This document shows, piece after piece, positions 1,809 to 52,990 of a stretch of DNA of 64,000 nt. The position numbers were made by a program, and so were the translations under genes. How positions within the stretch are numbered: the stretch's first letter is position 1; every line of letters begins with the position of its first letter. The notes below the pieces were generated by a model. It saw nothing but the letters and a program-made list of their open reading frames with translations. It did no database searches and was not told the origin of the DNA. Location: positions 62,001 to 126,000 of IMG/VR virus record IMGVR_UViG_3300025770_000870; one strand, written 5' to 3'.

Positions 1809-3053
1809 TTACATTTCTCCTTTAAGTGTTTCTAATTGGTTACTGACCTCAGTAAGTCTTAGATTTGAATCTTCGAATATACCATCAAAGTGTTCTTCTG
1901 ATACTAAGGTTTGGTTCTTATCAACTCCAGTAGTGATAGTTTCGATGTTATATTCTATTTCAGATAAGTTAGTCCATATCTTGTTTAGTGACTCTCCTAA
2001 ATTTTCACCAATACTCGATATTTTATTTTCAACATCACTGAGGTCTAATATAGATACTTCATTTGATTGTTTAAGTTTCGACATACTTATACCCGATGTT
2101 ATCATATACCTACCAAGTGATTTAGCGCTCGTGTTAGGTAAACTAGAATTCAATACATAAATATAAACTTTATAAGCTTGTTTAAGAGCTATTATATAAT
2201 AATCACATAATTGATCTTCTTCCAACGTTCTATGATCAATTCCATTTTGACTAACTAATTTAATATTTCCTTTATCAGCACCATAATCAACAAATTTGAT
2301 TTGATATGTATCTAGTCCATTTTCACCAATGACATCAGCTTTCTTATTATCATCAGGTACCGTACCATTAAGAAGACCTCCTATAAAAGACTCAAATAAG
2401 AACCCAGCACTTGTAGCATTAAAATGATCTTTCATCTCTTGTAAGTATTTCAATAGCATGATAGCTGATATCTTTTGTTGTATTACTTGTGTAGCATTTG
2501 AATTATTATATCCGCGGATGCCTAATGGGTTATTTAGTTTATTTAACTTTTCTCTTAACCCAGTCAGCCCTGTTCTATTACTAAGTGGTTTAGAGAACCT
2601 TTTAATCTTTTTGATAACCTCCATATCAATCTTAACATTGACCCAACCACTCGCCTCAGTATCGATTATATTAGAATATTCTGGTATAGATGGTGTCGGA
2701 TCAGTTTCATCCTCCCAGTCTTTGTTTCTTACCCATGGATTACCCAATTCATCAGTAACCACTTCTCCATCAAAGTTTCTCAATTGGTGATTTCCATTAA
2801 AATCAAATCCAACTAAAAATCCATTCTTGTCGATACCACCAATATATTCATGTTCTCTATTTCTTCTTAATTTATCAGTGTTATAATTCCAGTCCTTATC
2901 AATAATTATCTCAATTAAGTTACCACCTCTTCTGATATTTACTATATGTCCTTTCTTCTTAACTAATCTACCATCATTACCAATTATCTTATCAAGAACT
3001 TTTATACTTGTTCCTAATTCCTTTTTTTCGTTAAATCTTTTTAGGTGTTTCAT
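1809..3053 (-). CDS. Leader-tagged protein with putative PD-(D/E)xK nuclease-like domain
   Basis: Start MKHLKRFNE 5 nt after TAATATATA. GFLFESF...KADV...YQIK spacing resembles restriction-endonuclease-fold motifs. Confidence 0.5.
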   Translation of the reverse strand: MKHLKRFNEKKELGTSIKVLDKIIGNDGRLVKKKGHIVNIRRGGNLIEIIIDKDWNYNTDKLRRNREHEYIGGIDKNGFLVGFDFNGNHQLRNFDGEVVTDELGNPWVRNKDWEDETDPTPSIPEYSNIIDTEASGWVNVKIDMEVIKKIKRFSKPLSNRTGLTGLREKLNKLNNPLGIRGYNNSNATQVIQQKISAIMLLKYLQEMKDHFNATSAGFLFESFIGGLLNGTVPDDNKKADVIGENGLDTYQIKFVDYGADKGNIKLVSQNGIDHRTLEEDQLCDYYIIALKQAYKVYIYVLNSSLPNTSAKSLGRYMITSGISMSKLKQSNEVSILDLSDVENKISSIGENLGESLNKIWTNLSEIEYNIETITTGVDKNQTLVSEEHFDGIFEDSNLRLTEVSNQLETLKGEM

Positions 3054-3119
3054 TGACATATATATTAAAAATAAATACTAGATTTGATATACACAATTTG
3101 GCGAAATCATCAGAAATAC

Positions 3120-3152
3120 AAAAAGGCCCTGAGTAAAACTCAGAACCTTTTT
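3120..3152. terminator. Intrinsic terminator downstream of cspA
   Basis: AAAAGG-CCCTGAG-taaaa-CTCAG-aa-CCTTTTTT hairpin with A/T tails. Confidence 0.6.
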
Positions 3153-3178
3153 AATTGATTTTTCTAATTGATTTTTAA

Positions 3179-3376
3179 TTAATCAACTAACCCAACATCA
3201 ACAGCAGTCTTGCCTTTACGACCCTCACCTTCTGTGTATGTTACCTTATCAGATTCTCTTATCTCCACACCTTCTAATAGTCCTGTTATGTGTACGAAGA
3301 TATCTTCGCCTGTTTCATCATTATTAATGAATCCGAATCCTTTCGAATCATTGAAAAATTTTACTGTTCCTTGCAT
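3179..3376 (-). CDS. cspA: Cold-shock protein
   Basis: GTVKFFN..KGFGFI (RNP1) and DIFVH (RNP2); 65 aa. Confidence 0.95.
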   Translation of the reverse strand: MQGTVKFFNDSKGFGFINNDETGEDIFVHITGLLEGVEIRESDKVTYTEGEGRKGKTAVDVGLVD

Positions 3377-3505
3377 TATTTATTTATTTATTTTATTCTT
3401 TACTCAAAATGAGCTTGTTATTTACATTATACGTTGTTATTATAATTAGTTTAATAATTTATCATTTTTTTACGATACACAATTATAAAATTATAAATAA
3501 GTTTT

Positions 3506-3514
3506 TAATATATA
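3506..3514 (+). promoter_or_regulatory. TAATATATA putative phage late-promoter box (representative of ~33 copies seen)
   Basis: Recurs in sense orientation, usually 4-6 nt before start codons, including before structural genes. Confidence 0.75.
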
Positions 3515-3518
3515 CTTT

Positions 3519-3929
3519 ATGAATCATATAAAATCATATAAAATATTTGAATCCGAGTTGGGTTATGTTAGTAAACCAATCGATATAAAGTTCGATATAA
3601 AGACTGCTAAATTTGATTATAATAGAAATACAAAATATAGACATGGTATTGATAGGGTTATTAATGATGATGAAATAATTGAAATTGTCGAAAAGGGTAT
3701 GGAAAAATTAACCATTGATTTGATGAATGATAATTTGGATATTGGTGATAGATTCGTGTTGAAAGGTGAGGGTTTTGATGGTGATATGTTAAATTTAGTT
3801 TGTCAGTTAAATCCTGGTGAGAATTTTTTCACATTGATGATCATAACTGCTATGCGTAAAGAGGATTTCACAGGACATAGAAATCAATATATCTTGAATG
3901 TAGATACACAACAACATCATTACGAATAA
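3519..3929 (+). CDS. Leader-tagged hypothetical protein
   Basis: MNHIKSYKIFES leader; TAATATATA at 3506-3514. Confidence 0.75.
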   Translation: MNHIKSYKIFESELGYVSKPIDIKFDIKTAKFDYNRNTKYRHGIDRVINDDEIIEIVEKGMEKLTIDLMNDNLDIGDRFVLKGEGFDGDMLNLVCQLNPGENFFTLMIITAMRKEDFTGHRNQYILNVDTQQHHYE

Positions 3930-4759
3930 TGAGATATTTAAATAAATATAATATCTATAAAGGTGATTTCTTGTTAGAAAGTTTGAATGAGTCTATTGAT
4001 GTAGGTTCTTTTACATCTAAAATAAAAAATTATCTAAGTAATTTGAATAAGAATCAAATAAAAGAATACTATAAAAAATTCATTGAAAAGGTATCAAAAC
4101 TACCAAAAACAACAAAAAAGGCTATTTTAATAGGAGTTATACCAATATTTGCGTTAAATCTTAGTTCTGCTGACTTAGAACAATCAAGTGATCCAGTTGT
4201 TATAGAGGTTGTTAGTGAAGTAGAAACTTTAGAAGTGCAAGAACCAGTAGAAGAAATTGTAGAAGATAATTTCAAAAAAGGTTATGATTTTGTTTTAACA
4301 CAAAACGGGTGGGATTCTATACGAGATGAAGAGAAATTAAGATTATATCCGTATGATATAGGTGATGGTAAAATAACAGTTGGATGGGGACATGCCGAAG
4401 ATATCACTACATCTAAATATAAGATAGGTAATAAGATAAGTAAAGAGGAAGCTCAGAAATTATTAAAAGATGATTTGACATTAGCTGCTGATGCTGTTAG
4501 GCAAGTTTTCGTGGAGTGGAAAGAGAAGGATATAGATGTTGAAATAACACAAGATATGTTTGATGCTTTAGTTTCAATAACATTTAACATTGGTGTTGGT
4601 GGTATGAGAAATTCGGACTTTATACAAGACTTAAAGAAAGGAGATTATAAAGCTTGTGCTAATAGTATGAGAATACATAAGAGTAATCTATTTGAGAAGT
4701 TCCCTGGGTTAGAAACAAGACGAGGTAGAGAAGCTGATATTTACTTGAAAAATTATTAA
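3929..4759 (+). CDS. GH24 phage lysozyme with N-terminal leader and hydrophobic segment
   Basis: E.E.LRLYPYD.GDG.ITVGWGH catalytic motif; FDALVSITFNIG; GL..RR..E. Confidence 0.9.
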   Translation: MRYLNKYNIYKGDFLLESLNESIDVGSFTSKIKNYLSNLNKNQIKEYYKKFIEKVSKLPKTTKKAILIGVIPIFALNLSSADLEQSSDPVVIEVVSEVETLEVQEPVEEIVEDNFKKGYDFVLTQNGWDSIRDEEKLRLYPYDIGDGKITVGWGHAEDITTSKYKIGNKISKEEAQKLLKDDLTLAADAVRQVFVEWKEKDIDVEITQDMFDALVSITFNIGVGGMRNSDFIQDLKKGDYKACANSMRIHKSNLFEKFPGLETRRGREADIYLKNY

Positions 4760-4779
4760 ATAAAAAAATAAATAATATC

Positions 4780-5061
4780 ATGAAGACGGAAGAAGAATTA
4801 TCAAAAGAAAGTCAACCACAATATTTCACTTGGTTGTGGAGGAATAAAAAAACAGAGATATTACTTACCTTTGTTGGTATTGTATCATGTATTTTAACTA
4901 CACCGATAATACTAGATCCTATGAACGAAAACCCAATTATTGTAATGATTTTAGCTTTTATTGCAATATATGGATTTACTGTTGGTATGGCATTACAACC
5001 ATACACAATATATAAAAAATTAGTTAAGATGAATTATTGGTCACGTAATTCTCCTTATTAG
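4780..5061 (+). CDS. Two-TM membrane protein next to lysozyme
   Basis: Two hydrophobic segments; holin-like role possible but not demonstrable. Confidence 0.6.
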   Translation: MKTEEELSKESQPQYFTWLWRNKKTEILLTFVGIVSCILTTPIILDPMNENPIIVMILAFIAIYGFTVGMALQPYTIYKKLVKMNYWSRNSPY

Positions 5062-5079
5062 AAATAATATATAGAAAGT

Positions 5080-5376
5080 ATGAAATACTTAAAGACATTT
5101 GAAAATTATGGAATAGTAGAATCTGTTTCTTTCAATAGAAAGGATAAGGCTAGAATACTAACATTAAATGATAGAGCTACTGATGAGGATCACTTAATTA
5201 GACTAGCTGTTAATATGGCGAACGCTATTGGTAGAAATGTTGAAAAAGGAAGTGAGAACGAATATATCTCTGGTAAGAAAGCCTTTCAAAGAGGATTAGC
5301 AGCAGAAGATGAGAACTTCCACGAGGTAGCTCAGATATTTTTTGATAGAGCAAAAGAATTGGGATTCGAAGAATAA
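5080..5376 (+). CDS. Leader-tagged hypothetical protein
   Basis: MKYLKTFEN; TAATATATA at 5065-5073. Confidence 0.75.
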   Translation: MKYLKTFENYGIVESVSFNRKDKARILTLNDRATDEDHLIRLAVNMANAIGRNVEKGSENEYISGKKAFQRGLAAEDENFHEVAQIFFDRAKELGFEE

Positions 5377-6762
5377 TCATATAAATCTATACTTTTGAGA
5401 ATTATAATTTTTCTCGAATTGTTCTTGTGATAATTCCACACCCCCATGAATTGTCATTCCTAAAGTCTTTCCATTTAGAAAGTTTCCGACAGCAGACCTA
5501 TCACACCCAATATTGAATCCATTTGTAACGCTACTAGTCAATGTAGTTATAGTTATAGTATCTTCTAATACACCATTAATGTATAATTTAGCGTTTCCAT
5601 TTTCAACCGCTGAACATCCTATGTGATACCACGTATTTATTACAGGCGTAGTTGTAGCCGTCAAATTATCATTCACCGAAGCGTTTATTACAGTCGCTCT
5701 TAGTAAGTTTGGATTACCCGCATTAATCCTGATTAAAAAGTTTCTATTGTTAGCATTATCATTATATTCAGACCGATACTCGCCTAAAAATGCGTTTATA
5801 TAGATCCATTGCTCAAAACTAAAGGTAGATCCTATATCAGCAACAGGTAGAATCGGAAAACTTACATATTCGTCCGTGCCATCCATATCCAAAACCCCAT
5901 CGGTTATGGTTAAACCATTTCGAAGCTCTCCTATCATTGTTGGATCTACTATATTCTTTATCAGATTACTTCCCCACTTATTAGTAAGTTGATTCGACTT
6001 CGTAATTATTTGACTTGACGTGTACACACCTTCTGCTACGAACATTTCCCCGTAAAATATATTGCCTGATCCCGTTAATGTCGATTGACCGTGACCTAAA
6101 TAAGTAGCGCCTAAAGTCGCTAAAATAGCAGTTGCAGATGCGTTTATTGGTTTAGTTCCATAAGACACACCATCAACAAATAATTCCATTAACTTATTTG
6201 ATATTGATATTTTCAATGCGTAAATGTGTAAACTATCTATACTTTGGTCGGGTATTGTCCAAGTCGAAACTTCTTGCGTAGCCGTTCCTTGCCATTTATT
6301 AACACTCCTAAAAGTTGTTGATGTCGTGTGATTAATTGTTATTCCGTTAACTAATGGATTGATTGAAGTTGGCATTGAAAATATATTTCCATTGCTATAA
6401 TCGAATGTGGAATACATTATAAGTAACTCCAAAATACCATCTGCACTATATGAAGATGTTTGCACACCATTAGATGAGGTAACATCGTACCCGACACTTA
6501 AATTTCGATTGCTATAGTTCTCGTAAAATATAAACTCTTCGCCTACTGCCGAGGTTCCCGTATAGCCATTTCCACTTTGGTCGGGAACTACCAATATATT
6601 ATCGAGATTATTTAATCCCGTTATCTTAGAAAAATCCCAATGGAGTTTAATATTTGAATCAACTACATCTGGATAATTGGTTACCACAGATAGTTTATTA
6701 CCCGTATCAGATTGAAACGTTCCTGAACTTGTTATTGCTGATTTAAATCCTCCTGTGCTCAT
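5377..6762 (-). CDS. LamG/concanavalin A-like two-domain protein (tail fibre/receptor-binding)
   Basis: LDMDGTDEYV, FSFEQWI, WYHI, LYINGV and NYNSQKYRF motifs. Confidence 0.8.
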   Translation of the reverse strand: MSTGGFKSAITSSGTFQSDTGNKLSVVTNYPDVVDSNIKLHWDFSKITGLNNLDNILVVPDQSGNGYTGTSAVGEEFIFYENYSNRNLSVGYDVTSSNGVQTSSYSADGILELLIMYSTFDYSNGNIFSMPTSINPLVNGITINHTTSTTFRSVNKWQGTATQEVSTWTIPDQSIDSLHIYALKISISNKLMELFVDGVSYGTKPINASATAILATLGATYLGHGQSTLTGSGNIFYGEMFVAEGVYTSSQIITKSNQLTNKWGSNLIKNIVDPTMIGELRNGLTITDGVLDMDGTDEYVSFPILPVADIGSTFSFEQWIYINAFLGEYRSEYNDNANNRNFLIRINAGNPNLLRATVINASVNDNLTATTTPVINTWYHIGCSAVENGNAKLYINGVLEDTITITTLTSSVTNGFNIGCDRSAVGNFLNGKTLGMTIHGGVELSQEQFEKNYNSQKYRFI

Positions 6763-7490
6763 AAGTATCTATGTTTTTGTACTTCGTAATTATATAGTAT
6801 CTGTTCGGGAGTTAATACTGCACTATGTATAGTTGTTAGACCGAGAGTTCCTTGAAGTGTATATTGATTAAAGGCATTTAGTTGCAACCTACCTAATACC
6901 CATATATTATTTACTAAATCCGTACCGTACTGCGTTATGGGATTAATTGAATCGCTAACATCAGCAACCTTAACCCCATTAATAAACATTTCAGCATCCA
7001 ATACATCTGAGGGTGCAGTATAAACTATGTTCATCCAATCTCCTTGATTATAAGGAACTGTTGCGGGAATAGACCCATTACCCGAACCACCTTTTATTAA
7101 CTGATTAAGGCAATTAACCGACACTTCATTTGATGCTGCTTGTCCACTATTTCGACCCATACTTATTACCACAGCACCGCTTGAGCGACTTATGATATAT
7201 GAACTAAAGATATTTCTTTCTTCTTGAACCCAAGTGGAAAGTGTATAAGGTCTATCTGCTGCTCCTAAAGTTATTTGTGCTAATGGACTACTCGCTACAT
7301 TCACTTGGTCATCGACACCATCAAAAACTATACCTTTGTCAGAGAATGTTGTACCATTTTCTAAAAGGAGTTCTCTATGCTCAACAACATCTCTTATAGT
7401 AGTAGCGTCTTTACGCATAATTAAATTAGCACCATCAAAAGAGTACCTTAGATTGTCCTTTACTATTGATTTACGTGCGAAGTGTCCCAT
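6759..7490 (-). CDS. LamG-like protein
   Basis: IVKDNL...FDGVDDQV, YTLSTWV, MFINGV, NYEVQKHRY. Confidence 0.8.
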   Translation of the reverse strand: MGHFARKSIVKDNLRYSFDGANLIMRKDATTIRDVVEHRELLLENGTTFSDKGIVFDGVDDQVNVASSPLAQITLGAADRPYTLSTWVQEERNIFSSYIISRSSGAVVISMGRNSGQAASNEVSVNCLNQLIKGGSGNGSIPATVPYNQGDWMNIVYTAPSDVLDAEMFINGVKVADVSDSINPITQYGTDLVNNIWVLGRLQLNAFNQYTLQGTLGLTTIHSAVLTPEQILYNYEVQKHRYL

Positions 7491-7491
7491 C

Positions 7492-7752
7492 TTATCCTTC
7501 TATAAGCCCTATTGGTAATGTCCATTCTACCGTTGCCATTACTGCTAATATCTCTTCGTGAGTGTATGTAGGTATGGTTGGTGTAATTACTGATACACTA
7601 CTTGGTATATCTCCCTCCCATTTTAATACAAATTCTGTTTCATCAATATTCTTACGAACTGTATCAGCAGATGTCTGTTGGACTTGTGAATAATCTACGT
7701 TATTTAATTCAGCTATCGGTGCTATTGCGTATGTCTTATTATTGTGTGCCAT
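7492..7752 (-). CDS. Small phage protein associated with LamG fibre cassettes
   Basis: VDYSQV.QTSADTVRK...FVLKWEG..P...YTHEEIL..M...EW pattern; position inside the cassette. Confidence 0.7.
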   Translation of the reverse strand: MAHNNKTYAIAPIAELNNVDYSQVQQTSADTVRKNIDETEFVLKWEGDIPSSVSVITPTIPTYTHEEILAVMATVEWTLPIGLIEG

Positions 7753-7760
7753 AACTTTCT

Positions 7761-8480
7761 TTAATTTATATATCTTGATTTTTGTGCTTCGTAATTATCT
7801 AGTGCTTCTGCTTGGGTTAATTCTTTGTTGTAGATAACTAACTTTTTAAGACTTCCTTCTAAATAATTTGCAGACTCGTTAAATCTTCTACCGATTACAA
7901 ATCTAGCATTTGCACCAATCGCTATTGGAGAAGCACTTAAAGTATCATAGAATGTGACTAAAGTATCTTCAACGCCATCAGTATAAATGTGTATGCCCGA
8001 AACTAAACTACTACCATCATAAGTAACTACGTGGTGGTGTATTCCATCGTTATACGTGTTTGTTGTTCTTACTGCAACCCCATTAGTAGTCGGTGTATTA
8101 ACTAAACTGAAACCTAAAGCACCTAAAGGGGTATTTCGATATAACACTCCCCAACCTCTGTATGAATTATCAGTTCCTTGTCTGCCACATACCCAATCAA
8201 ATACCGAACCCGTAGATTTATCTATCCAAAATTCAATAGTAAATGAATCAGTCCTCTCGAACTTGGCAAAGTCTTCATCAGCAAAATCAATCCATTGGTC
8301 AACACCATCAAGTTCCATTCCATCATCAACTACTGTAATTCCGTTTTGAAAAGTTCCATCATTACGAGCCACTAAGTCACGAATGGTACTGCCTGAATTC
8401 GGATAAGATACTTTATTGTCAGCATCTATAAGTAACCCAGAATTTGTTACTATTGGTATTTTATGATAGTGTACTCCCAT
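7761..8480 (-). CDS. LamG-like protein
   Basis: DA.N..SYP.SG, LDGVDQWI, FTIEFWI, HHVVTYDG, IYTDGV, NYEAQKSRY. Confidence 0.85.
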   Translation of the reverse strand: MGVHYHKIPIVTNSGLLIDADNKVSYPNSGSTIRDLVARNDGTFQNGITVVDDGMELDGVDQWIDFADEDFAKFERTDSFTIEFWIDKSTGSVFDWVCGRQGTDNSYRGWGVLYRNTPLGALGFSLVNTPTTNGVAVRTTNTYNDGIHHHVVTYDGSSLVSGIHIYTDGVEDTLVTFYDTLSASPIAIGANARFVIGRRFNESANYLEGSLKKLVIYNKELTQAEALDNYEAQKSRYIN

Positions 8481-8494
8481 AATTATGATATTTT

Positions 8495-9172
8495 TTATAC
8501 TATTGTTGTGTTAAATACACTTGTTACTATCCACGCAGCTACTGTTGCCTCATATATTAGTTCTACTGAATCTCCTATATCGTTAAATGTTATAGTTGTA
8601 TATCCTAAAAGGCTTGTGGGTGTTAGTGTTACTTTATCAGTAGGATCACCTTCAGTAGTATATAATATTGTTATTCTCTGACCTTCAATACCATTTGGTA
8701 AGTCTAAAAAATCTGATGTGGTTGTGGTTGTTATTTTAGTAATACTTTTTGTAACATCTATACTTGCTGTAGTTCCTGTTGATGTTATGGTATAACTATT
8801 TAGATTTACGTCTATTGTGTTTGTGCTTAAAGTAGTATCTCCCGTCACATCATTATAGTTTAACTCTAAAGGAACACCACTCGTTTGAAATGGATTTCCC
8901 ATTTGAATTAACCAATCGGCATCCGCATACATAATATCATTACCACTTACATCGGCTACTCCAAATAGTTGACCATCTTTATCGTCAGTGATTGTGAATA
9001 GACCTCCCGTAGTTCCATCAAAAGTAATGTTAGAAGCAGCAACTCCTGCTGTTGCTGATTGAACAATTTTAATAGCGTCAGATTCCAATGCCGCAGTTGA
9101 TATAAACTTTAAATCACCATCTAGTTTTATATCACCATCTAGTATTTCCGCATTTCCGTATATTTTTGCCAT
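8495..9172 (-). CDS. Putative tail fibre/virion structural protein
   Basis: Thr/Gly-rich beta-type sequence heading the LamG operon; TAATATATA at 9223-9231. Confidence 0.6.
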   Translation of the reverse strand: MAKIYGNAEILDGDIKLDGDLKFISTAALESDAIKIVQSATAGVAASNITFDGTTGGLFTITDDKDGQLFGVADVSGNDIMYADADWLIQMGNPFQTSGVPLELNYNDVTGDTTLSTNTIDVNLNSYTITSTGTTASIDVTKSITKITTTTTSDFLDLPNGIEGQRITILYTTEGDPTDKVTLTPTSLLGYTTITFNDIGDSVELIYEATVAAWIVTSVFNTTIV

Positions 9173-9285
9173 ATCCCGTTATTTATTTTACAATCGACTT
9201 AAAATATATAATTGTAATATAGTATATATTAATTTTTTAATAAAAAATAGTTTGTGTTTCTAAATAATACGAAAAATAAATAAAA

Positions 9286-11267: not shown

Positions 11268-11286
11268 ACACTATATATAAATATAT

Positions 11287-44945: not shown

Positions 44946-44997
44946 TATAATGTAAACTTTTACATGGTCAAGAAATAAAAGAAATAAATCTTTAAAA

Positions 44998-45261: not shown

Positions 45262-45704
45262 TTAAAATATCAATGGGTTCGGACCATGCTGGTTTTGAAT
45301 TAAAACAGGAAATTAAAAAATACCTTCACACACTTGGTAATAAAGTTGAAATAAGTGATAAGGGTTGTTTTGTTGAGGAAAGGTGTGACTACCCAGACTA
45401 TGCACATTTAGTTGCAGAAGATGTTGAAAAAGATATATGTGATTTTGGTATATTAGTTTGTGGATCAGGTAATGGTATAAATATGTCAGCTAATAAATGG
45501 GATGGTGTTAGATCTGCATTATGTTGGAACTCCGAAATAGCTAATATGGCGAGACTTCATAACGATGCTAATATACTAACACTACCTGGGAGATATATTT
45601 CGGTAGAAGACGCAATAGAGTGTGTGTGTGAGTTTATGAAGACCGAATTTGAAGGTGGTAGACACTCCGATAGAGTTGAAAAAATATCTATTTGTAGATC
45701 CTAA
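45258..45704 (+). CDS. rpiB: Ribose-5-phosphate isomerase B
   Basis: GSDHAG, DYPD, CGSGNG, ARLHNDAN, FEGGRH..RV. Confidence 0.97.
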   Translation: MIKISMGSDHAGFELKQEIKKYLHTLGNKVEISDKGCFVEERCDYPDYAHLVAEDVEKDICDFGILVCGSGNGINMSANKWDGVRSALCWNSEIANMARLHNDANILTLPGRYISVEDAIECVCEFMKTEFEGGRHSDRVEKISICRS

Positions 45705-45809
45705 AATTGGTAAAAATAAATTCGATGAAATTTATTAAAATTTCAAGGTTTTGGTATAAAGTGATAATATAAAGTTAATAGATATATTACAAAAAATAAC
45801 ATCTTACTT

Positions 45810-46043
45810 ATGAAAAATTTCGATAACAACCTTAGAGAATTTACTATTTCACATTTAAATGGAAATAAAATAGATGAAGATTATAAATTTCTTGTTGAGA
45901 AATTTATTTTTTATATGGATGCTTATTGTGCTGAAATGAAAACCACAGATAGTGAAGTTTTAAACAATGATAAGTTATATAAAACGGTATCTTCTCTTTT
46001 TAAGAGTGTTATTATGGAGAAGCAACTTAATATGGTTGTTTAA
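45810..46043 (+). CDS. Hypothetical protein
   Basis: 77-aa ORF. Confidence 0.6.
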   Translation: MKNFDNNLREFTISHLNGNKIDEDYKFLVEKFIFYMDAYCAEMKTTDSEVLNNDKLYKTVSSLFKSVIMEKQLNMVV

Positions 46044-46445
46044 TTAAAAGTTTGTGTGTGCTACACCATCACCGAATGTAACATATTCCTTTTCTTTTTC
46101 TTTTGTAAAAGAAAGATATTTATCAATAGGATAATGTTCACGATCTTCGGTATCTTTTTCGAACCATTCTGATATTTTCATTAAGTCACGTATCCTCTCA
46201 ATTATATCTTTTAGGTTTGAAGAATCTGGTGTTTCCTTATATTCTTTCCATTGAATTCTAACAAATATTTGATCACTTTTGGGTAACATCTTACTAACAT
46301 TTATAGAAAATCCTTCGTCTTCCAATTCCATACAAATATCCTTTATCGTTTGTACCAAACAATCTGTTTCTTCGTTATCATATCCCATTCTACAAGGTTT
46401 GGAAACGTTTGAGTTAAATTCATTTATAGATTTTAGATATCTCAT
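46044..46445 (-). CDS. Leader-tagged paralog-family protein
   Basis: MRYLKSINEF; IKDICMELEDEGFSINV. Confidence 0.75.
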   Translation of the reverse strand: MRYLKSINEFNSNVSKPCRMGYDNEETDCLVQTIKDICMELEDEGFSINVSKMLPKSDQIFVRIQWKEYKETPDSSNLKDIIERIRDLMKISEWFEKDTEDREHYPIDKYLSFTKEKEKEYVTFGDGVAHTNF

Positions 46446-46963
46446 TTTTCGTAAGGAGCAAATATGTGTTCCCAGGGGATAATATCTTCTGTGTGATACA
46501 TAGCAATATCAAATCTAATACCATGTTCACCATCACCTTGAAATACCGAGGACTCTAAAGAAAAATTAAGTATTTTGAATTTATACCCAAAATCTTTTAT
46601 TTTAATTAACGAATCAGAAAACTCATTAAAGAATTCAATTGTACTAGACATTTGTTTATCATTTACATCTCTAATTGATGATGATAAATCATCAAATCTT
46701 AATCTAAGTGTATATCCTTTATAAAGAGGTTTATCTATGTAATTTATTCTATCTCTAACTTCAAAGTTTTCATCAACTAAAGTATGTGTTGAGTTTTTAA
46801 TTCCTATAATTTTACCACCTAAATCAACCAATTCTAAGAAAAATTCTTTTAACTCACCATCTCTATTATATTCAGATCTCATGATAGCTAATTCAAACCA
46901 ACCATCTCCCTCGCCCGATTCGTTTATCATCTCTACATTATTATAATTCTTTAAGTATTTCAT
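46442..46963 (-). CDS. Leader-tagged paralog-family protein
   Basis: MKYLKNYN..MINES; LKEFFLELVDLG; TAATATATA at 46968-46976. Confidence 0.75.
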   Translation of the reverse strand: MKYLKNYNNVEMINESGEGDGWFELAIMRSEYNRDGELKEFFLELVDLGGKIIGIKNSTHTLVDENFEVRDRINYIDKPLYKGYTLRLRFDDLSSSIRDVNDKQMSSTIEFFNEFSDSLIKIKDFGYKFKILNFSLESSVFQGDGEHGIRFDIAMYHTEDIIPWEHIFAPYEK

Positions 46964-46973
46964 TAACTATATA

Positions 46974-47194
46974 TTATTTTCCTTTGAAGAAATTCCAAAA
47001 TCCACCGACTTTCTTTTTAGGATATTCAACTGCTTGTGGTTTGATTGGTTCTTCTGGTTTATTTAACTCTCCATTACTATACCACATATTTCTCTTATCT
47101 TTAGATAGTCTTGGTATTCTGGGGAATCGGTGTTGACTCCATTTTTATTTAATATCGATTTAGCGTATGCTATATTTTCATTAATAATACTCAC
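46974..47194 (-). pseudogene. Internally deleted/frameshifted gene
   Basis: GTG-SIINENIAYAKSILNK...REICG then frameshift to ...PKKKVGGFWNFFKGK*; TTATATATA box 4 nt upstream. Confidence 0.55.
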
Positions 47195-47211
47195 GTTGTA
47201 TATATAAAAAC

Positions 47212-47246
47212 AAAAAAACCCAATCACTTTTGGTGATTGGGTTTTT
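47212..47246. terminator. Intrinsic terminator after the FKBP gene
   Basis: AAAAACCCAATCAC-ttttg-GTGATTGGGTTTTT. Confidence 0.9.
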
Positions 47247-47265
47247 ATATCAATATGTTTGGTTA

Positions 47266-47712
47266 TTAAGCCTCTGTTGTCTCAGTAGCAGTTGCTTGAA
47301 TATCAATAACTTCAATGTCAAATTGGATATCTTTCCCAGCTAACGGGTGATTACCATCAATCACAATGTGATTTTCTTTAATCTCTTTAACTTTTACTGG
47401 TGTACTTTGACCATTGTCTGATTGTGCTTCAAGTGTTAATCCAACTTCAACATCCCCAGGCATTTGGTCTTTAGGTACTTCTACAATTAGGTCTTCTCTT
47501 ACTGGTCCGTAAGCATCTTCTGGTGTTAAAAACTCTGTGTTGACTTTATCTCCTATATTTTTACCGATTAAAACGTCTTCAAATCCCGGAATTATTTGTC
47601 CAGAACCAATTTGAAACGTTAAGGGATCTCTTCCCTGTGATGTGTCAAAAGTTGTTCCATCAGTTAATTTACCAGTATAATGAACGCTAACTACATTTCC
47701 ATTTTCTATCAT
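47266..47712 (-). CDS. FKBP-type peptidyl-prolyl isomerase (SlyD/SlpA-like)
   Basis: VHYTGKL.DG..FD, IIPGFE, PEDAYG, IDGNHPLAGK. Confidence 0.95.
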   Translation of the reverse strand: MIENGNVVSVHYTGKLTDGTTFDTSQGRDPLTFQIGSGQIIPGFEDVLIGKNIGDKVNTEFLTPEDAYGPVREDLIVEVPKDQMPGDVEVGLTLEAQSDNGQSTPVKVKEIKENHIVIDGNHPLAGKDIQFDIEVIDIQATATETTEA

Positions 47713-47759
47713 AATAATTAATTTATTTTTAAGTTATATTATTAATTCTTTTTTTGTTG

Positions 47760-47882
47760 TTATAATTGGTTAATTAATAACCATTTTTTATATTTAAGTG
47801 TGTTACTTAGAAAGTCATCTATTTCATATTCAACTGAATCTGTTGGTACCTCAATTATTAATATATTATCTTTTATAATCAT
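47760..47882 (-). CDS. Small hypothetical protein (40 aa, not in ORF track)
   Basis: MIIKDNILIIEVPTD...; TAATATATA at 47935-47943. Confidence 0.45.
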   Translation of the reverse strand: MIIKDNILIIEVPTDSVEYEIDDFLSNTLKYKKWLLINQL

Positions 47883-47973
47883 AATTCTTAAATGTTTGTA
47901 TATTTATATATTTTTCTTAAATGTTTTTGTTAATTATATATTAAACTTTTTGTTATTATTAATTAGAATTAAT

Positions 47974-48663
47974 GTGAGAGAATCTTTCGAAGAATATAAA
48001 AAAACAATAGAAACCTTAATTATCAACTTCAAATATCTATATGATGGTGATGTTAAATCATCTAGTAATAAATCATACTCTGGTAGTATATCACATAAAA
48101 ACACTTCACCTAGTTTTGTTATAAATTGTATAAATCAAATATACGATGAAAGTATTCAATCGATGATCGATAAGTCAATACCAATGAGTATAGGATTAAA
48201 AACTGAACCATTGATAGGTAAACCAAGTAATGTGGCTGATAATATATTTTATTATATTGATAAATTAAAAACAAACTCATTCAAACCTCTTTATGTTTTT
48301 TGTTCATATAATGGAAGAAAATTATTTGGTATAACTAAAGAAATTAATAAAAACAAGCCTTTCCCGGGACACTTTTATGATATAGAAAAGTATCATAGTA
48401 GATCATATGACTTATATTTATCACCTATACTAATTAATGATAAAGAAGATGATATTGAGATTTATGTAACTGACAAATCAATACAAAGCTTAGTTTATTC
48501 TATACAAAATATGGATTATAAAATTTCAAAAGATGATGAATCATACAAACATACAATGTCTTATCATTTTTATGATTGTGACTTTACCTGTTATAAATTG
48601 ATAATCAAGGATGTATCTAAATGGAGGGATGAGAAAATAAATGAAATATTAAATGAGAATTGA
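47974..48663 (+). CDS. Hypothetical protein with C-terminal tag
   Basis: Probable GTG start RESFEEY; ends WRDEKINEILNEN. Confidence 0.65.
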   Translation: MRESFEEYKKTIETLIINFKYLYDGDVKSSSNKSYSGSISHKNTSPSFVINCINQIYDESIQSMIDKSIPMSIGLKTEPLIGKPSNVADNIFYYIDKLKTNSFKPLYVFCSYNGRKLFGITKEINKNKPFPGHFYDIEKYHSRSYDLYLSPILINDKEDDIEIYVTDKSIQSLVYSIQNMDYKISKDDESYKHTMSYHFYDCDFTCYKLIIKDVSKWRDEKINEILNEN

Positions 48664-49060
48664 TTGTGATAGTTTGGATTTTGGATTGGAATGTTATGAT
48701 CCAAGTTCTTTAGAGGAACGAAATAGATTAAAATCTAGTAAATTAGTTAAGGATTTATTGAAAATAAATAATAAAATGGAACCTAGAAGAAACTATATGG
48801 TTATATCAATGAATGTCTTTAATCTATTAGAGTATCACGATAGATTTGAACATATAAAATTATCTAGTAAAAAAGAAATAGGCCCATTAACACTTGTTGG
48901 TTATATAGGTGGTTTAGATTGTTATGTAGATTTAAATATGAAACATAATAACATACTATTACATTACGATAAACAAGTTATTCGTAATCTTAGATTAGAA
49001 TCTATATTAGATGATAGTAATATTATTGATGATGAGGTTGAAATTGAAGTGATAATTTAA
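48653..49060 (+). CDS. Protein resembling a fragment of gp23-type major capsid protein, with tag
   Basis: NYMVIS..V...LE....F...VGYIGG..CYVD; IRNLRLESIL. Confidence 0.5.
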   Translation: MRIDCDSLDFGLECYDPSSLEERNRLKSSKLVKDLLKINNKMEPRRNYMVISMNVFNLLEYHDRFEHIKLSSKKEIGPLTLVGYIGGLDCYVDLNMKHNNILLHYDKQVIRNLRLESILDDSNIIDDEVEIEVII

Positions 49061-49093
49061 CTGGACTAAAAGATTTTTATCTCACCTAACATA

Positions 49094-51106
49094 TTATTTA
49101 TTATTGTTATTGAATTTCTCAAATTTAGCGATAATCTTTTTATTTGTATTATCGATAGTCATTAAGCTTTTCCTATCCGTTTTCATTCCTTTTCCAGCAC
49201 CGGCCCTAATAAATTCTTCTTTTGTTACTGTTGATGGTGTACCATCGTTATTAACTAATTGATATTCGAAATTTTCATTAGTATCTTGTCCTAATAACTT
49301 AACACCTTTGGTATCATAATCAACATCCTCTCCAGATCTAGCAGTATCTATCTTTTCTTTAAGAGCATTTACAAAATCTCTAGCTATCTTCTTTAATACA
49401 TCAACATATTTATCTGTATCATAAGCTATTTTCATCATAGCTTTATTATATTTTAATAGATTAAGACCAGCGATATTTGTAATTGATGGGTGACCTCCAC
49501 TATTTCTTATTACAATTTCCCATACTGGAATTTTGAGATTATTTAATAGTGTTTTTTGTTCGTAAGATAAATCTTTATGTAAAACATTCATAGCTTCTTC
49601 TAATCCATCTTCTTTAATATCAACATTAAGAATAGTTCTACCCTCTTTCTTAAATACACAATCAGAATAAAAAGCTTCTAAATCAGAATATTTAAATCCA
49701 ACACCTTCGTATGAATCACCTTCATCCTTCTTCATTTTTTTCCAATCTTGTGAATTTTCAAATTCATTCTTAATTGATTCTAATGATATATAATACTTAC
49801 TCATCATTGGTTCATACTTAGCTAATACTTCTTTAGAGATTTCTCCTAAGTTAATATCTTTAAGTATTTTCTCCTTAAATGGATTACAAGAAACTTGTAC
49901 AAGACCCATTGGCCAAACAATACAGATAAATTCCGCATCCGGGAAATTCTTAAATGGTGTATATCTATCATAAGAACCTGGTTTAATCATACTACCACCT
50001 CCATATTGCATAAGTATTTTATAATCTTCATCAATATGAATACCCTTTATAGAACTCTTACCATTGAGAGCTTTTCTTCCTAACCAAGTAACGCTATAAA
50101 CATTTTTCGGTTTATCTTCAATATAATTTTTATCAAATAATCTATCAACATACTTAACATACTCTTCGTTAGATATTCCTAGCTTCTTAGCTAATTCAAC
50201 ATCTTGAGAGGCTGGCATTCTGTGTATATTTTTTAGGATGCTTAATTCGGTTCTACCAATTTCCATAACATCACCACTTTCACTTTCAACGAATCCGTAA
50301 TCCTTCATTCTCTCGATATAGTTAGTAAGGTTTGTTTTTATTTCTTCTGGTGTTGCTAATCTACCAAGCTTATCGCTTGTTTTTGCATTATTAATATAAT
50401 GTCTAATATTGTTAAACATTGAGTATAAACTCGCAGTTGAGTCTAATAATAAACACTCAAGTATATTCTTATTTATGTGATCTCTTTTACCATCTAATGA
50501 TTTAACAGTTATTCTTTTATTCTTATAAGCTAATAATAATCTATTAACCACTAATCCCATCATAAATCTATTCTTTTGTGGTGTTTCTGCCTTTTCATAT
50601 TTGAATATAGAATTTTGAACATCTTCTGGCTTAATATTATTTCTCAAGAAATCTGCTGAATCAATTGTTTGAATCATTTTTATATCTTGTGCCGTGAATA
50701 TATCTGAATATGAAACTTCACCTGATATAATCTCAACATTTGATCTAGCTGATTTGAAATATGTTGATTCTGTGTCCTCAGCACCAACTTGTTTATCATG
50801 ATGATCCGATTGTATATGGAACATTGGTTTACCGTGTGCGAAATCAACTAAAACTTTTAATGTATCAGGTCTTCCGTTTTTAACAGCATACTCTAATCCA
50901 CCATATTGAATGATATGACAATCAACTGTTTCTATTTGATAGTAATTTTTTAAGAATACACTCATAGCTAATGCTGATGTTACTCCATCTAAATCTTTGT
51001 GAAAGTATATCTCACATTCTTTATATCCTTTAGTTATAGCTTTTATGTTTCTTAAACCTACTTCCTCGTTTACAAACTCAGTATATTTTTTCATATTATT
51101 TTTCAT
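49094..51106 (-). CDS. Leader-tagged DHH-family phosphoesterase with inserted wHTH-like segment
   Basis: MKKYTEFVNE; HKDLDGV.S, LVDF, SDHH, GGH; TAATATATA at 51134-51142. Confidence 0.8.
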   Translation of the reverse strand: MKNNMKKYTEFVNEEVGLRNIKAITKGYKECEIYFHKDLDGVTSALAMSVFLKNYYQIETVDCHIIQYGGLEYAVKNGRPDTLKVLVDFAHGKPMFHIQSDHHDKQVGAEDTESTYFKSARSNVEIISGEVSYSDIFTAQDIKMIQTIDSADFLRNNIKPEDVQNSIFKYEKAETPQKNRFMMGLVVNRLLLAYKNKRITVKSLDGKRDHINKNILECLLLDSTASLYSMFNNIRHYINNAKTSDKLGRLATPEEIKTNLTNYIERMKDYGFVESESGDVMEIGRTELSILKNIHRMPASQDVELAKKLGISNEEYVKYVDRLFDKNYIEDKPKNVYSVTWLGRKALNGKSSIKGIHIDEDYKILMQYGGGSMIKPGSYDRYTPFKNFPDAEFICIVWPMGLVQVSCNPFKEKILKDINLGEISKEVLAKYEPMMSKYYISLESIKNEFENSQDWKKMKKDEGDSYEGVGFKYSDLEAFYSDCVFKKEGRTILNVDIKEDGLEEAMNVLHKDLSYEQKTLLNNLKIPVWEIVIRNSGGHPSITNIAGLNLLKYNKAMMKIAYDTDKYVDVLKKIARDFVNALKEKIDTARSGEDVDYDTKGVKLLGQDTNENFEYQLVNNDGTPSTVTKEEFIRAGAGKGMKTDRKSLMTIDNTNKKIIAKFEKFNNNNK

Positions 51107-51144
51107 ATCAGTATAATAATTTTCTTTATTCTTTATATATTAAA

Positions 51145-51588
51145 TTAGACAACGTATTTTATTTTTATGTCTTCTATTCGATGCATAAATATTTTAAGTT
51201 GATATCCCACTACCTTTGACTTCGAAATATACCATCCAAAATCACCCAATCTATCATTTGTGGTTTCTATTATTTCTTTAAATTCACTAGATTTTATATA
51301 ATCTTCTAATTCTTCTTTTTGTCTTCCGACATCATTAGCATTCCGTTGAACCAATTCCTGAAAGACACATCTTATATAAGGTATAGATTCTATAACCATT
51401 TTACCATCCTCTTTATCAACTGATGTATCTCTTTGGATAAGATTTTTATCAAAGTATGTTGATGTATTATATCCAGCATCCGATATATCAACAAACATAT
51501 CCTCAATGTATTCCTTTGTTAATCCATTATAATGTTCTTCCTTTGGTACTAACATTTCCCAACCTTCGAATGTCTTTAAATATTTCAT
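51145..51588 (-). CDS. Leader-tagged paralog-family protein
   Basis: MKYLKTFEG; IEDMFVDISDAGY. Confidence 0.75.
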   Translation of the reverse strand: MKYLKTFEGWEMLVPKEEHYNGLTKEYIEDMFVDISDAGYNTSTYFDKNLIQRDTSVDKEDGKMVIESIPYIRCVFQELVQRNANDVGRQKEELEDYIKSSEFKEIIETTNDRLGDFGWYISKSKVVGYQLKIFMHRIEDIKIKYVV

Positions 51589-51595
51589 TATTTCA

Positions 51596-52990
51596 TTATT
51601 TCTTTAAGAATTGCTTACCATATGATTTCATAATACCCTTATCAGTTCCTTTCTCTCCATCAGCATCAAACTTAGTATCAAAGAAGTTATTATAATCAGT
51701 AACAATCTTAACATCTGAATCCATTGTTGCATAAGGACCTAGTTTACCTGATCGATAAACACCACCTCTCATATCACCATTTAAATAACCTCCTACAAAA
51801 TAACAATTGGTTAATTTACTACGCTCAACATTACAATTTAATATCTTTGTATCTTCTGCATCAGAGTTATTTAATTTTGATTTAGATACTTGTGAATTTA
51901 TTATGTTAGTTCCCATAAAGAAACAATCATCAAATATACCCTCGACATTACAGTTTATTAATTCATATCCTTTTATGGTAGATGTTCCTTTTATATTAGC
52001 ATCAACAACCTCCATGGTTTGATCAGTTGTTACATAATTGATAATACACTCTTTCATATCTTCCGAACCTTCTATTATATTATAAAGTTTTGTATAAATT
52101 TTACCATAATATGCAGAAACGATATCATATGAGTGATTCTGGTCTATTTGTATTTGTATAGTTGGAAAATCGATTATAAAATTATCATAACTTGATAAGT
52201 TCTTATAATTCAATATATTTTCTTCTAAATAATCTTCTAATTTATTAATATCTTCTGAATTGAAATCAGATCTAACTGAATCATAAACATTAATAATAAA
52301 TCTTTCCAAGAAGTAAATTAATTGTCCAATATTTTTCTCGTAATCTTCACCCCCGATATATCTAAATTCTAACCTTTGTGTTTCTCTGGTATTACTTATG
52401 TTAGTGAAGTTTATACCATAATATTTATCATTTGGTAATCTCATGTTGTTTTTAACAACACCAATTGGTATGTTAAAAAAATCATATTCCTTAAATGGAA
52501 TCATTTTCTTAATACTCTTAGCATAAACATTTGATTTCCTTGATGGATAAGCTCTGTATATCTCTTCTTCATCAGTATTTAATATTAATTTTAATACATT
52601 TAGATCATTTAGATCCATATCATCATCAGTAAAAGATATATTAAAGTGTACTGATGACTTCTCATTTGTATATCCATAATTTTGTATGAACTTTAGAATC
52701 TTAATTAAGAAGTATTTAGCATTATAAAAATCCATTGGTCCAGTCACTATTTCAACCATATTGGAACCACCAGATAAATCAGGTTCTATTTTGAAATTAT
52801 TTGCATCTGGTTTGAAGTCTGAGTGATATTGTCTAAATCCCCAAACTTTCACTGGATTAAGTTCCTGATTCAATAATTCAAGTGTTTTATAATAAGATAA
52901 ATCCTTTAAATAAAATTCAAACTCGAAACCAACTTGTGATTTTTTGAGCTTGTTTGTTTGGCTTAGAAATTTATCAGAGTATTTTCTCAT
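51596..52990 (-). CDS. Putative amidoligase (COOH-NH2 ligase) with beta-helix-like C-terminus
   Basis: GFEFEF, D.S...EIVT.P, SVHFNIS, KYYGIN, EFRY; TAATATATA at 52996-53004. Confidence 0.75.
   Translation of the reverse strand: MRKYSDKFLSQTNKLKKSQVGFEFEFYLKDLSYYKTLELLNQELNPVKVWGFRQYHSDFKPDANNFKIEPDLSGGSNMVEIVTGPMDFYNAKYFLIKILKFIQNYGYTNEKSSVHFNISFTDDDMDLNDLNVLKLILNTDEEEIYRAYPSRKSNVYAKSIKKMIPFKEYDFFNIPIGVVKNNMRLPNDKYYGINFTNISNTRETQRLEFRYIGGEDYEKNIGQLIYFLERFIINVYDSVRSDFNSEDINKLEDYLEENILNYKNLSSYDNFIIDFPTIQIQIDQNHSYDIVSAYYGKIYTKLYNIIEGSEDMKECIINYVTTDQTMEVVDANIKGTSTIKGYELINCNVEGIFDDCFFMGTNIINSQVSKSKLNNSDAEDTKILNCNVERSKLTNCYFVGGYLNGDMRGGVYRSGKLGPYATMDSDVKIVTDYNNFFDTKFDADGEKGTDKGIMKSYGKQFLKK

Follow-up and report, generated by a model that had tools for sequence, protein, structure and literature searches.

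Why do about a quarter of the proteins encoded in a segment of an apparent giant phage genome, although most of them are unrelated to each other, begin with nearly the same short peptide? The segment analyzed here, which we call the window, comprises 64,000 nucleotides (nt), namely positions 62,001 to 126,000 of the IMG/VR virus record IMGVR_UViG_3300025770_000870, and the peptide, which we call the leader, is an N-terminal tag of 8-12 residues. A preliminary description of this DNA noticed some 33 open reading frames (ORFs) with such starts, likened them to the capsid-targeting sequence (CTS) that T4 internal proteins (IPs) carry, and proposed that they serve to load dozens of proteins into the phage head for delivery along with the DNA. 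In our count, 25 to 34 of the 104 window ORFs (~24%) carry a leader, in agreement with that estimate, and all six examples quoted there, with starts at 5080(+), 3053(-), 34453(-), 40598(+), 28395(+) and 51094(-), indeed begin long ORFs. The tag is present at a frequency far above chance, and it is a portable, unstructured N-terminal add-on that is selected at the peptide level; whether it is also a capsid-targeting signal is the question that we address below.

The leaders fall into two classes. The dominant class 1 has the consensus M-[KR]-[YH]-[LI]-[KR]-x-[FY]-(0-3 residues)-E-[SN], and class 2, which is rarer and found on larger proteins, has the consensus M-(0-3 residues)-K-x-[YF]-x-[ED]-[FY]-[ILV]-x-E, with the core [YWF]xx[FYW][LIVMF]x[ED] beginning at residues 3-8; the motif as literally written in the preliminary description is too strict and is matched by only 3 genes. 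Using a position matrix that covers residues 2-8, with a threshold score of at least 10, we detected 21 class 1 ATG sites in the window, compared to 0.1 in third-order Markov simulations, and every one of the 21 begins an ORF, of 66 to 414 amino acids (aa). A pattern that is independent of the matrix, M[KR]x[LIVM][KR]x[FY], gave 16 six-frame matches against 0.87 +/- 0.92 (maximum 4), with 13 of the 16 at gene starts, and the class 2 core was found 4 times where 0.2 occurrences were expected. Besides these 21 core class 1 and 4 class 2 leaders, there are about 4 sub-threshold class 1 variants and 5 doubtful leaders. A glutamate is present at positions 8-12 in 94% of the leader proteins compared to 33% of the others; positions 9-12 lie outside the matrix and so were not used in selecting the leaders. 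At P1', next to this glutamate, S and N predominate, and beyond the leader the sequence is acidic, with D and E accounting for 23% of residues 11-25 as compared with 14% in other proteins.

The window, with a GC content of 29%, is 100% identical to parts of a 242-kb and a 483-kb contig in IMG/VR, and its sole relatives in the GenBank phage collection are two genomes of uncultured phages, LR745206.1 (635 kb) and LR756502.1 (642 kb), which have been placed in the Mahaphage clade with predicted Bacteroidetes hosts (PMC7162821). The presence in the window gene 217-1146(+) of a C-terminal sorting domain of the type IX secretion system (Por_Secre_tail, E = 1.2e-7) agrees with a Bacteroidota host, and the product of this gene is possibly exported via the host system. 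The window appears to be part of a Mahaphage-type giant phage of Bacteroidota, with a contig of at least 483 kb and a T4-type mode of head morphogenesis. In LR745206.1, the closest complete relative, which we used for genome-wide counts and for the identification of head genes, 86 core class 1 genes and 28 class 2-type genes (4.5 expected for the class 2 core) are dispersed genome-wide among 891 ORFs (12.8%), so that the surmise of many more leaders outside the window is borne out, with 86 to 114 such genes. Even this count is an underestimate because there are leaders at a second in-frame methionine as well as many weaker variants. Such second-methionine leaders were seen in several genes (MSM-KHLK…, MKNNM-KKYTEF… and MDRKKM-KYLK…; 3059/3053(-) and 51106/51094(-) in the window, and orthologues in LR745206.1), and the leader could be used for correcting start-codon calls.

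The leader is not special to this phage, as had been implied, but is found in many AT-rich contigs of phages with T4-type heads. A search of IMG/VR with the back-translated peptide MKYLKTFE gave, among the matches listed, 120 loci (1.04 Mb in total, 20-33% GC) that contain at least 415 matrix matches, 93% of which begin ORFs of at least 50 aa. In these listed loci, leaders are densest in tandem arrays of small genes, with up to 20 per 10 kb; some of these have another box upstream. The listed loci belong to contractile-tailed phages and, where head genes are included (L091, L080), these match T4 gp23 and gp20. Four loci from IMG/VR contigs of 113-222 kb and 20-23% GC (L033, L045, L082 and L036; the L082 contig is unlisted) consist of arrays of genes for proteins of about 100-160 aa, nearly all of which start with MKY[IL]K.FE; in these arrays, a different conserved box, CAAATAAATTTAAC, is located 2 nt before the ATG, and in many of the proteins the leader is followed by a common …P[ED][IV]GD motif.

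When the same back-translated peptide was searched in 596 Gb of cellular genomes, 88 stretches were retrieved, about 60 of which are copies of one 43-aa ORF, the rest being chance singles, such as LysR regulators. This ORF (MKYFKTFEDLH), the near-identical copies of which are scattered in the Bathymodiolus japonicus methanotrophic symbiont (NZ_BLYC01) and related Methylococcales (L121-L208), is unrelated to the leader, and its MKYFKTFE matches were rejected. The tag is virus-specific. The nearest cultured relatives, by the tail sheath, are PTm1, pT24 and MaF61, of which PTm1 was scanned for leaders. In the completely scanned genome of this cultured Tenacibaculum phage (225 kb, 29-31% GC), none of the 295 ORFs has a class 1 leader and there is one, chance-level class 2 match; given the equal GC content, AT-richness alone is insufficient to produce the motif. 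Neither a megablast search of the phage collection with the dense locus L082 nor a tblastn search with an array protein detected the leader in cultured phages. Our literature search turned up no paper that describes the leader motif and none that links capsid targeting to huge phages or megaphages, and no virion proteome of a leader-bearing phage was found in the literature or the phage collection; hence the tag is apparently undescribed in the literature searched.

Several lines of evidence indicate that what is conserved is the peptide. In the leaders, leucine is encoded by six different codons, and tyrosine, lysine, glutamate, phenylalanine and histidine by both codons each. The codon frequencies at codons 2-8 of the 86 LR745206.1 leader genes match those at the same positions of non-leader genes, with AAA accounting for 76% of the lysine codons in both. 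Given this free synonymous variation, selection acts on the peptide, and a signal at the RNA level is ruled out. Between reciprocal-best-hit orthologues from the window and LR745206.1, the leader proteins show 69% identity in residues 1-10, 44% in residues 11-25 and 42% in the body, compared to a flat ~56% for non-leader orthologues. Thus, the leader is the best-conserved segment of proteins that otherwise evolve faster than average. The NUDIX hydrolase encoded by 33908..34453(-) illustrates the portability of the tag: the orthologues have pattern-preserving leader variants ahead of a conserved core that begins at about residue 16, and one homologue, 53% identical, lacks the leader and begins directly at the core. 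In the AlphaFold model of this protein, residues 1-12 have pLDDT values below 50 and no secondary structure, as opposed to ~90 for the core.

The bodies to which the leader is attached are, as originally stated, mutually unrelated. With the first 15 residues removed, BLASTP detected a single pair of paralogues (28395-29861(+) and 39078-40559(-), E = 3.5e-44), and the Pfam families that were recognized differ (phage lysozyme, GNAT, NUDIX, and weak DHH and winged-helix matches), so that a single paralogous family as the source of the leader is ruled out. Searching Pfam with the 86 leader proteins of LR745206.1 yielded only 2 matches, and none of ten large leader proteins matched a PHROGs family; function, therefore, provides no independent hint. 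The absence of the leader from host-like genes was confirmed for ClpP (37074-37832), RNase H (23547-24020) and RpiB (45258-45704); the rnpA gene of the preliminary description was not identified, and the 'cyclase' mentioned there is probably 24336-25061, which has no Pfam match.

The T4 CTS is an N-terminal propeptide of 10-19 residues. For packaging, the first 10 residues of IPIII are enough. Targeting depends chiefly on residues 4 and 7 and processing on residues 8 and 10, and aspartate at position 10 blocks cleavage but leaves targeting intact (PMC9026906). The internal proteins of T-even phages are diverse, non-homologous, injected proteins involved in anti-restriction and anti-defence that have the leader alone in common (PMC3012670, PMC12373910). 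Taking the N-termini of the ip gene products from the T4 record, we found that IPII and IPIII fit the class 2 pattern exactly, and that this pattern finds only these two genes in 50 kb of T4, whereas IPI starts with M-K-x-hydrophobic-K-x-F, the skeleton of class 1. The targeting residues are Y4 and F7 in IPII and IPIII, and F4 and F7 in IPI; class 2 leaders have [YF] at position 4 and [FY] at position 7, whereas all 86 class 1 leaders of LR745206.1 have L, I or V at position 4 and 84 of them have F or Y at position 7. Class 2 also keeps [LIVM]-x-[ED] at the positions homologous to the T4 processing site. The claimed resemblance to the T4 CTS thus extends to positions that have been mapped as functional in T4 (PMC9026906), to 4 and 7 in both classes and to the processing positions 8 and 10 chiefly in class 2. 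In both systems, the tag is at the extreme N-terminus of non-homologous proteins, its positions 4 and 7 are hydrophobic or aromatic, and there is a glutamate further on, a likeness known here from sequence alone, and the tagged proteins evolve fast, as expected of participants in an arms race (PMC12373910). The leader-bearing lineage also shares with T4 a gp23-type major capsid protein (MCP), a gp20-type portal and a gp21/S77 protease.

These head genes are encoded in LR745206.1; no head genes were found in the window. The portal protein of LR745206.1 is similar to that of PTm1 (phmmer, 2e-46), and the MCP, L227:3753-5435(+), belongs to the Pfam family Gp23 (E = 1.8e-26). Between the two lies the gene for a 707-aa protein, L227:1547-3670(+), with a BLASTP match (2e-22) to the PTm1 'prohead core scaffolding protein and protease', so that the gp21-type prohead protease that the preliminary description proposed to look for was indeed found, along with the gp23-type MCP and the portal, in the relative. 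As in PTm1, protease and scaffold are fused in one protein, and in the alignment with T4 gp21, the NRNxRxY, GExxHP and SSR motifs are invariant. The N-terminus of this protein is MKPVLIIE, in which LIIE aligns with the autocleavage logo 'LIE-9' of T4 gp21 (PMC9026906). The MCP propeptides carry hydrophobic-x-E-[NS] sites, with VLE-N and INE-N in columns that are conserved with T4 gp23; the maturation site itself could not be placed by alignment to E65/A66 of T4 gp23, and a PDB sequence search with the protease-scaffold gave no match. Taken together, the gp21-like motifs, the LIIE sequence and the glutamate sites of the MCP suggest that the prohead protease of the relative is a glutamate-specific enzyme of the T4 type. 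The prohead proteases of T4, phiKZ, SPN3US and 201phi2-1 all cut after glutamate, including at one TFE site (PMC5694885).

Many leader genes are preceded by a short element, TAATATATA, hereinafter the box, which occurs in the window in 36 copies on both strands (1778..62183) against 8.9 expected. The box is located within 45 nt upstream of 19 of the 34 leader genes but only 5 of the 70 others (Fisher p = 1e-7, which bears out the suggested co-occurrence), and in most cases it starts at -13 to -16 and thus ends 4-7 nt before the ATG. Most of the unboxed leader genes have a boxed gene immediately upstream in the same orientation, in accord with the description of leader genes as following a box either directly or within the same small operon. 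The spacers between the end of the box and the ATG are bimodal, 4-7 nt and 16-32 nt; of 54 leader genes with a box no more than 70 nt away, 36 have the 4-7-nt spacer. In the window, the box also precedes two tail-module genes (53604-53612 before 53630, and 62175-62183 before 62167). In LR745206.1, the box or a close variant is found 26-54 nt upstream of the genes for the portal, protease, MCP, sheath, terL, neck, head-completion and baseplate proteins, whereas the DNA polymerase and single-stranded DNA-binding protein genes lack it and the ligase gene has a host-type TAnnTTTG box. With this distribution, the box is best read as a late promoter, and its spacings before the structural genes are similar to those of the T4 late promoters, in which TATAAATA is located at -34 to -36; late co-expression of the leader and structural genes is, therefore, plausible. 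No TATAAATA was detected within 80 nt upstream of the T4 ip genes, and T4 thus offers no direct counterpart of a promoter that abuts the gene. In addition, 75 genes under the class 1 threshold share the tight box-to-ATG spacing, and because many but not all of these are weaker leader variants, the box is not a leader-specific cassette. Of the proposed portable box-plus-leader unit, then, the leader is portable, at the peptide level, and the box is not specific to it.

A Bacteroidota-type TAnnTTTG box was observed at seven non-leader window genes, in five of which, 22773-23114(-), 23999-24307(-), 24336-25061(-), 34490-34912(+) and 42723-43502(-), it starts 12-13 nt before the ATG. The tight layouts of this box and of the phage box point to leaderless or nearly leaderless mRNAs and would imply two transcription classes, a host-type one (early?) and a phage-type one (late?).

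Taking these observations together, the best-supported explanation is that the leader represents an expanded, diverged T4-type CTS system, although we judge the chances of this being so to be about evenly divided. Under this interpretation, the tag, probably a short amphipathic segment with hydrophobic positions 4 and 7, would bind the scaffolding core of the assembling prohead; the gp21/S77-type prohead protease would clip it after the conserved glutamate; and the body would stay in the head, to be ejected into the host together with the DNA. The ejected fast-evolving acidic ORFans and few enzymes (lysozyme, NUDIX, GNAT, M15 peptidase) might then act before phage gene expression. It is a more tentative possibility, on balance somewhat doubtful, that more than 100 mostly fast-evolving proteins (~10-13% of the genes) are loaded by the tag and delivered as a ready-made 'early proteome' of factors for anti-defence and takeover. 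A single set of the 114 tagged LR745206.1 proteins, with each present once, amounts to ~2.6 MDa, and T4 packs ~1000 internal-protein molecules. The heads of SPN3US hold ~50 different proteins, and their ejection proteins total over 40 MDa (PMC5694885, PMC7411985), so it is not implausible that the products of 10-13% of the genes would be packaged, and by analogy with T4 and SPN3US, tens of copies of each tagged protein per 0.6-Mb capsid would not be unreasonable.

A number of observations weigh against capsid targeting. The dominant class 1 consensus differs from that of T4: among 107 class 1 leaders, the P3 residue relative to the glutamate is F in 34, I or L in 26, T in 19 and A in 4, so that the canonical T4 [LI]-x-E site, which is echoed by class 2, is present in only a minority (26/107). 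The leader proteins are soluble and acidic (median body pI 4.9; 83% below 6), unlike the basic T4 IPI, IPII and IPIII (pI 9.0-9.65). The head genes were found in the relative (the sheath of which is ~68% identical to that of another leader-bearing locus) and not in the window. Nor do T4-type heads necessarily come with the leader, given that the same set of head genes is present in PTm1, where the leader is absent. The association of the box with leader genes is not exclusive, and we infer late timing from gene identity alone. We likewise infer, rather than observe, core binding, cleavage, packaging and injection, and a cargo of at least 114 different proteins would far exceed what has been documented. 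Compared with T4, there are also differences in scale and setting: 25-34 tagged genes in 64 kb and 86-114 per genome as opposed to 3 in T4 and ~10 known across the T-evens, genome-wide dispersal as opposed to the two hot-spot loci of the T-even ip genes, and Bacteroidota as hosts.

Other systems bear a partial resemblance to this one. Encapsulins recruit unrelated cargo into a shell of the HK97 fold by means of short, portable terminal peptides; those peptides are usually C-terminal, have a different consensus, and are not proteolytically removed, and no DNA-containing virion is involved. The giant phages phiKZ, 201phi2-1 and SPN3US have ~50 head proteins and a T4-related, glutamate-cutting prohead protease, and conserved N-termini on their diverged paralogues are thought to be CTS-like (PMC5694885). 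Most propeptides of those phages, however, exceed 100 residues, and they vary among themselves, with (A/S/G)-x-E sites, in contrast to the one shared 8-12-residue tag followed by a short acidic linker described here. The PeSL cassettes of T4-type phages are, like the arrangement in the window, promoter-containing elements before many small variable ORFs in hyperplastic regions (PMC2839356, PMC4122927), and PeSL-like mobility could, by analogy, be the route by which the box-plus-leader unit spread. Unlike the leader, PeSL is a non-coding, nucleotide-conserved element (early promoter and stem-loop), whereas here the conserved unit is a peptide with free synonymous sites.

Several explanations that do not involve the capsid have to be considered. 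The tag could be a sorting or turnover signal, either a degron read by Clp or a docking peptide for some other phage assembly or compartment. Such a role would fit the predicted unstructured and exposed state of the tag, the acidity of the tagged proteins, in which they differ from the T4 internal proteins, and the genuine ClpP encoded in the window (37074-37832, Pfam E = 8e-53), with two ClpP copies in LR745206.1 and none in the leaderless PTm1. This correlation is, however, based on two genomes, no unfoldase or adaptor gene was identified, and there is no obvious rationale for marking for destruction proteins that are expressed from late-type promoters; moreover, a degron would not explain why the leader matches the T4 CTS position by position, why the glutamate is conserved or why T4-type head genes are present. 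We regard this explanation as rather unlikely. Less likely again is a translation device, whereby the first codons or residues would have converged for initiation or early elongation on leaderless mRNAs. The closeness of the box to the ATG in 36 of 54 boxed leader genes, the AT-rich leader codons and a mild preference for A/T-ending codons at the 5' ends of all genes are in its favor. However, the choice of codons in leaders is no tighter than in non-leader genes, with leucine drawing on six codons, conservation reaches the glutamate at residues 8-12 and specific aromatic positions, unboxed operon-internal genes retain the leader, the same peptide is preceded by a different box in other phages, and PTm1 has no leader at an equal GC content; the 75 tight-box genes under the class 1 threshold count against it as well, although a good share of these are weaker class 1 or class 2 variants.

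The leader might also be a functionless passenger of gene capture, in which genes are recombined behind a promoter together with its adjoining first codons. Shuffling by regulatory cassettes is documented in T4-type phages (PMC2839356, PMC4122927), the bodies are unrelated and mostly ORFans, and the association of the box with the leader is highly significant (p = 1e-7); a passive peptide, however, would hardly be the most conserved part of the orthologues (69% vs 42%), with pattern-preserving substitutions and unconserved synonymous sites, nor would it be expected behind different boxes and inside operons. As a rival, this scenario is improbable to a slightly greater degree than the preceding one, and since spread by cassettes is compatible with CTS function, it is a mechanism of spread rather than a true rival. 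Finally, that the leader is a mere by-product of AT-rich composition and start-codon context, a concern raised already in the preliminary description, is exceedingly improbable. K, Y, L, F and E do have AT-rich codons, and the genome is 29% GC, but the 21 matrix and 16 pattern matches far exceed those in the Markov simulations, almost all of the matches are at true gene starts, and the 225 kb of PTm1 yielded no class 1 leader; chance and AT-richness are ruled out by these simulated and real-genome controls.

Should the CTS interpretation be correct, no known set of proteins packaged in virions and injected would come close to this one in size, and a role would be assigned to a sizeable share of the unknown genes of huge phages. 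It would also provide a sequence rule for picking candidate injected effectors and anti-defence proteins in uncultured phages, hundreds of them in the AT-rich contigs analyzed here, so that the injected proteome could be read directly from sequence. The T4 CTS principle, which already serves for protein delivery, would thereby gain a new consensus and a new host phylum. Because non-homologous proteins that share a CTS are already known in T-even phages, the novelty would lie in the scale and the lineage rather than in the principle; the scale, the consensus, the host phylum and the link to the 'dark matter' of huge phages appear to be unreported. Whatever its role, a virus-specific peptide signal that is under tighter constraint than the proteins carrying it marks more than 10% of the genes of a 0.6-Mb genome.

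Among the individual leader genes of the window, many class 1 members have a box upstream. The highest score, 20.8, belongs to 1809..3053(-) (MKHLKRFNE, 414 aa), with the box at 3059-3067(-), 5 nt from the ATG, and no Pfam or PHROG match; the upstream in-frame ATG at 3059 is probably not its true start. In 5080..5376(+) (MKYLKTFEN, 98 aa, score 20.2; box 5065-5073(+)), the leader is identical to that of the LR745206.1 orthologue. This group also includes 3519..3929(+) (MNHIKSYKIFES, 136 aa, score 12.5; box 3506-3514(+), 4 nt from the ATG), 12596..13150(+) (MKHLIRYNES followed by an acidic linker, 184 aa, score 16.9; box 12581-12589(+)), 13625..14056(+) (MKHLKRINE, 143 aa, score 17.8; box 13612-13620(+)), 19301..19735(-) (MEYIKTYE, 144 aa, score 15.2; box 19740-19748(-)), and 20489..20935(+) (MKYLRTYKIFES, 148 aa, score 17.6), the box of which, 20476-20484(+), is in a divergent promoter region shared with another box, 20469-20477(-). 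Further along are 31953..32153(+) (MKNIKTFEN, 66 aa, score 14.6; box 31940-31948(+)), the above NUDIX hydrolase 33908..34453(-) (MKFVKTFES, 181 aa, score 13.4; Pfam NUDIX E = 9.7e-14; box 34458-34466(-)), 41604..41858(+) (MRYLRTYKKFTEN, 84 aa, score 17.0; box 41589-41597(+)) and 46442..46963(-) (MKYLKNYNNVE, 173 aa, score 17.4; box 46968-46976(-)). The box is more distant in 25432..25818(+) (MKYLKKFFED, 128 aa, score 16.5; box 25398-25406(+), 25-nt spacer), the orthologue of which has an identical leader, and in 44412..44945(+) (MKHIKRFDE, 177 aa, score 17.1; box 44353-44361(+), 50 nt upstream).

Operon-internal class 1 leaders start 3929..4759(+) (MRYLNKYNIY, 276 aa, score 14.8), which overlaps the stop of 3519-3929 and has a C-terminal Phage_lysozyme domain at residues 134-268 (Pfam E = 2.8e-25); 14053..14472(+) (MRYMKTYES, 139 aa, score 17.5), in which the leader is 90% identical and the linker 7% identical to those of the orthologue; 32150..32623(+) (MKYLKKFDKIDES, 157 aa, score 16.9); 33040..33921(+) (MKHLTTHNE, 293 aa, score 16.8); 46044..46445(-) (MRYLKSINE, 133 aa, score 14.7); and 51145..51588(-) (MKYLKTFEG, 147 aa, score 20.2). 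Two more class 1 genes are the GNAT acetyltransferase 15493..15882(+) (MKYLKKFND, 129 aa, score 18.9; Pfam Acetyltransf_1 E = 1.4e-7) and 40598..40879(+) (MKYIKPYKIFES, 93 aa, score 15.6). Class 1 variants that match the pattern are 21926..22282(+) (MKLKRFNED, one residue short, 118 aa), downstream of the boxed 21717-21923, and 40973..41353(+) (MRIKRFNEIE, 126 aa; box 40944-40952(+)); weaker ones are 25111..25380(-) (MLHLKLFEEF, 89 aa, score 8.1; box 25385-25393(-)) and 32648..33043(+) (MKTLNKLKLYEEF, 131 aa, score 0.5), the latter taken in by eye only.

Class 2 is represented by 28395..29861(+) (MKSYTEFLLE, 488 aa; box 28381-28389(+)), 39078..40559(-) (MLKKYFDFINES, 493 aa; box 40579-40587(-), 19-nt spacer) and 49094..51094(-) (MKKYTEFVNE, 666 aa; box 51134-51142(-)), all matching the class 2 pattern, and, in a class-2-like form, by 10431..11267(-) (MINKYSDYITE, 278 aa), which has the generalized T4-CTS core at the N-terminus and no PHROG match. 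The first two are the paralogues mentioned above; both members of the pair are retained in LR745206.1, with 59% and 64% identity, and these ~490-aa proteins contain a cysteine-rich stretch with a weak BSD2_CRD match. The 666-aa protein has an alternative upstream ATG at 51106 and weak Pfam matches to HTH_45 (winged helix) and DHH, both below the cut-offs. Doubtful leaders, under both thresholds, are found in 11881..12390(+) (MLLKYKLFLEKK, 169 aa; box 11867-11875(+)) and 51596..52990(-) (MRKYSDKFLS, 464 aa; box 52996-53004(-)).

Tail and baseplate genes occupy the right end of the window (53.6-63.7 kb) and include a Phage_base_V spike, a tail lysozyme and a C39 peptidase; the remainder consists of small ORFans and host-like enzymes, namely RNase H, ClpP, RpiB, FKBP, NT5C, a metallophosphatase and GH16. 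Two of these, the genuine ClpP 37074-37832(-) and the FKBP-type prolyl isomerase 47266-47712(-), are both missing in PTm1, and the two ClpP copies of LR745206.1 are located in the L213 and L214 chunks of that genome. Three tandem, distantly related paralogues at 5377-8480(-), the largest of which contains a ConA-like/Laminin_G_3 domain, may be receptor-binding or fibre proteins. Elsewhere, an AT-rich phage contig encodes an 813-aa protein, L085:9895-12336(+), with a Major Vault Protein shoulder domain (E = 2e-26), Vault_3 and SPFH, and another phage contig encodes a hybrid histidine kinase of 1051 aa, L079:1500-4655(-), that contains PAS/GAF and receiver domains.

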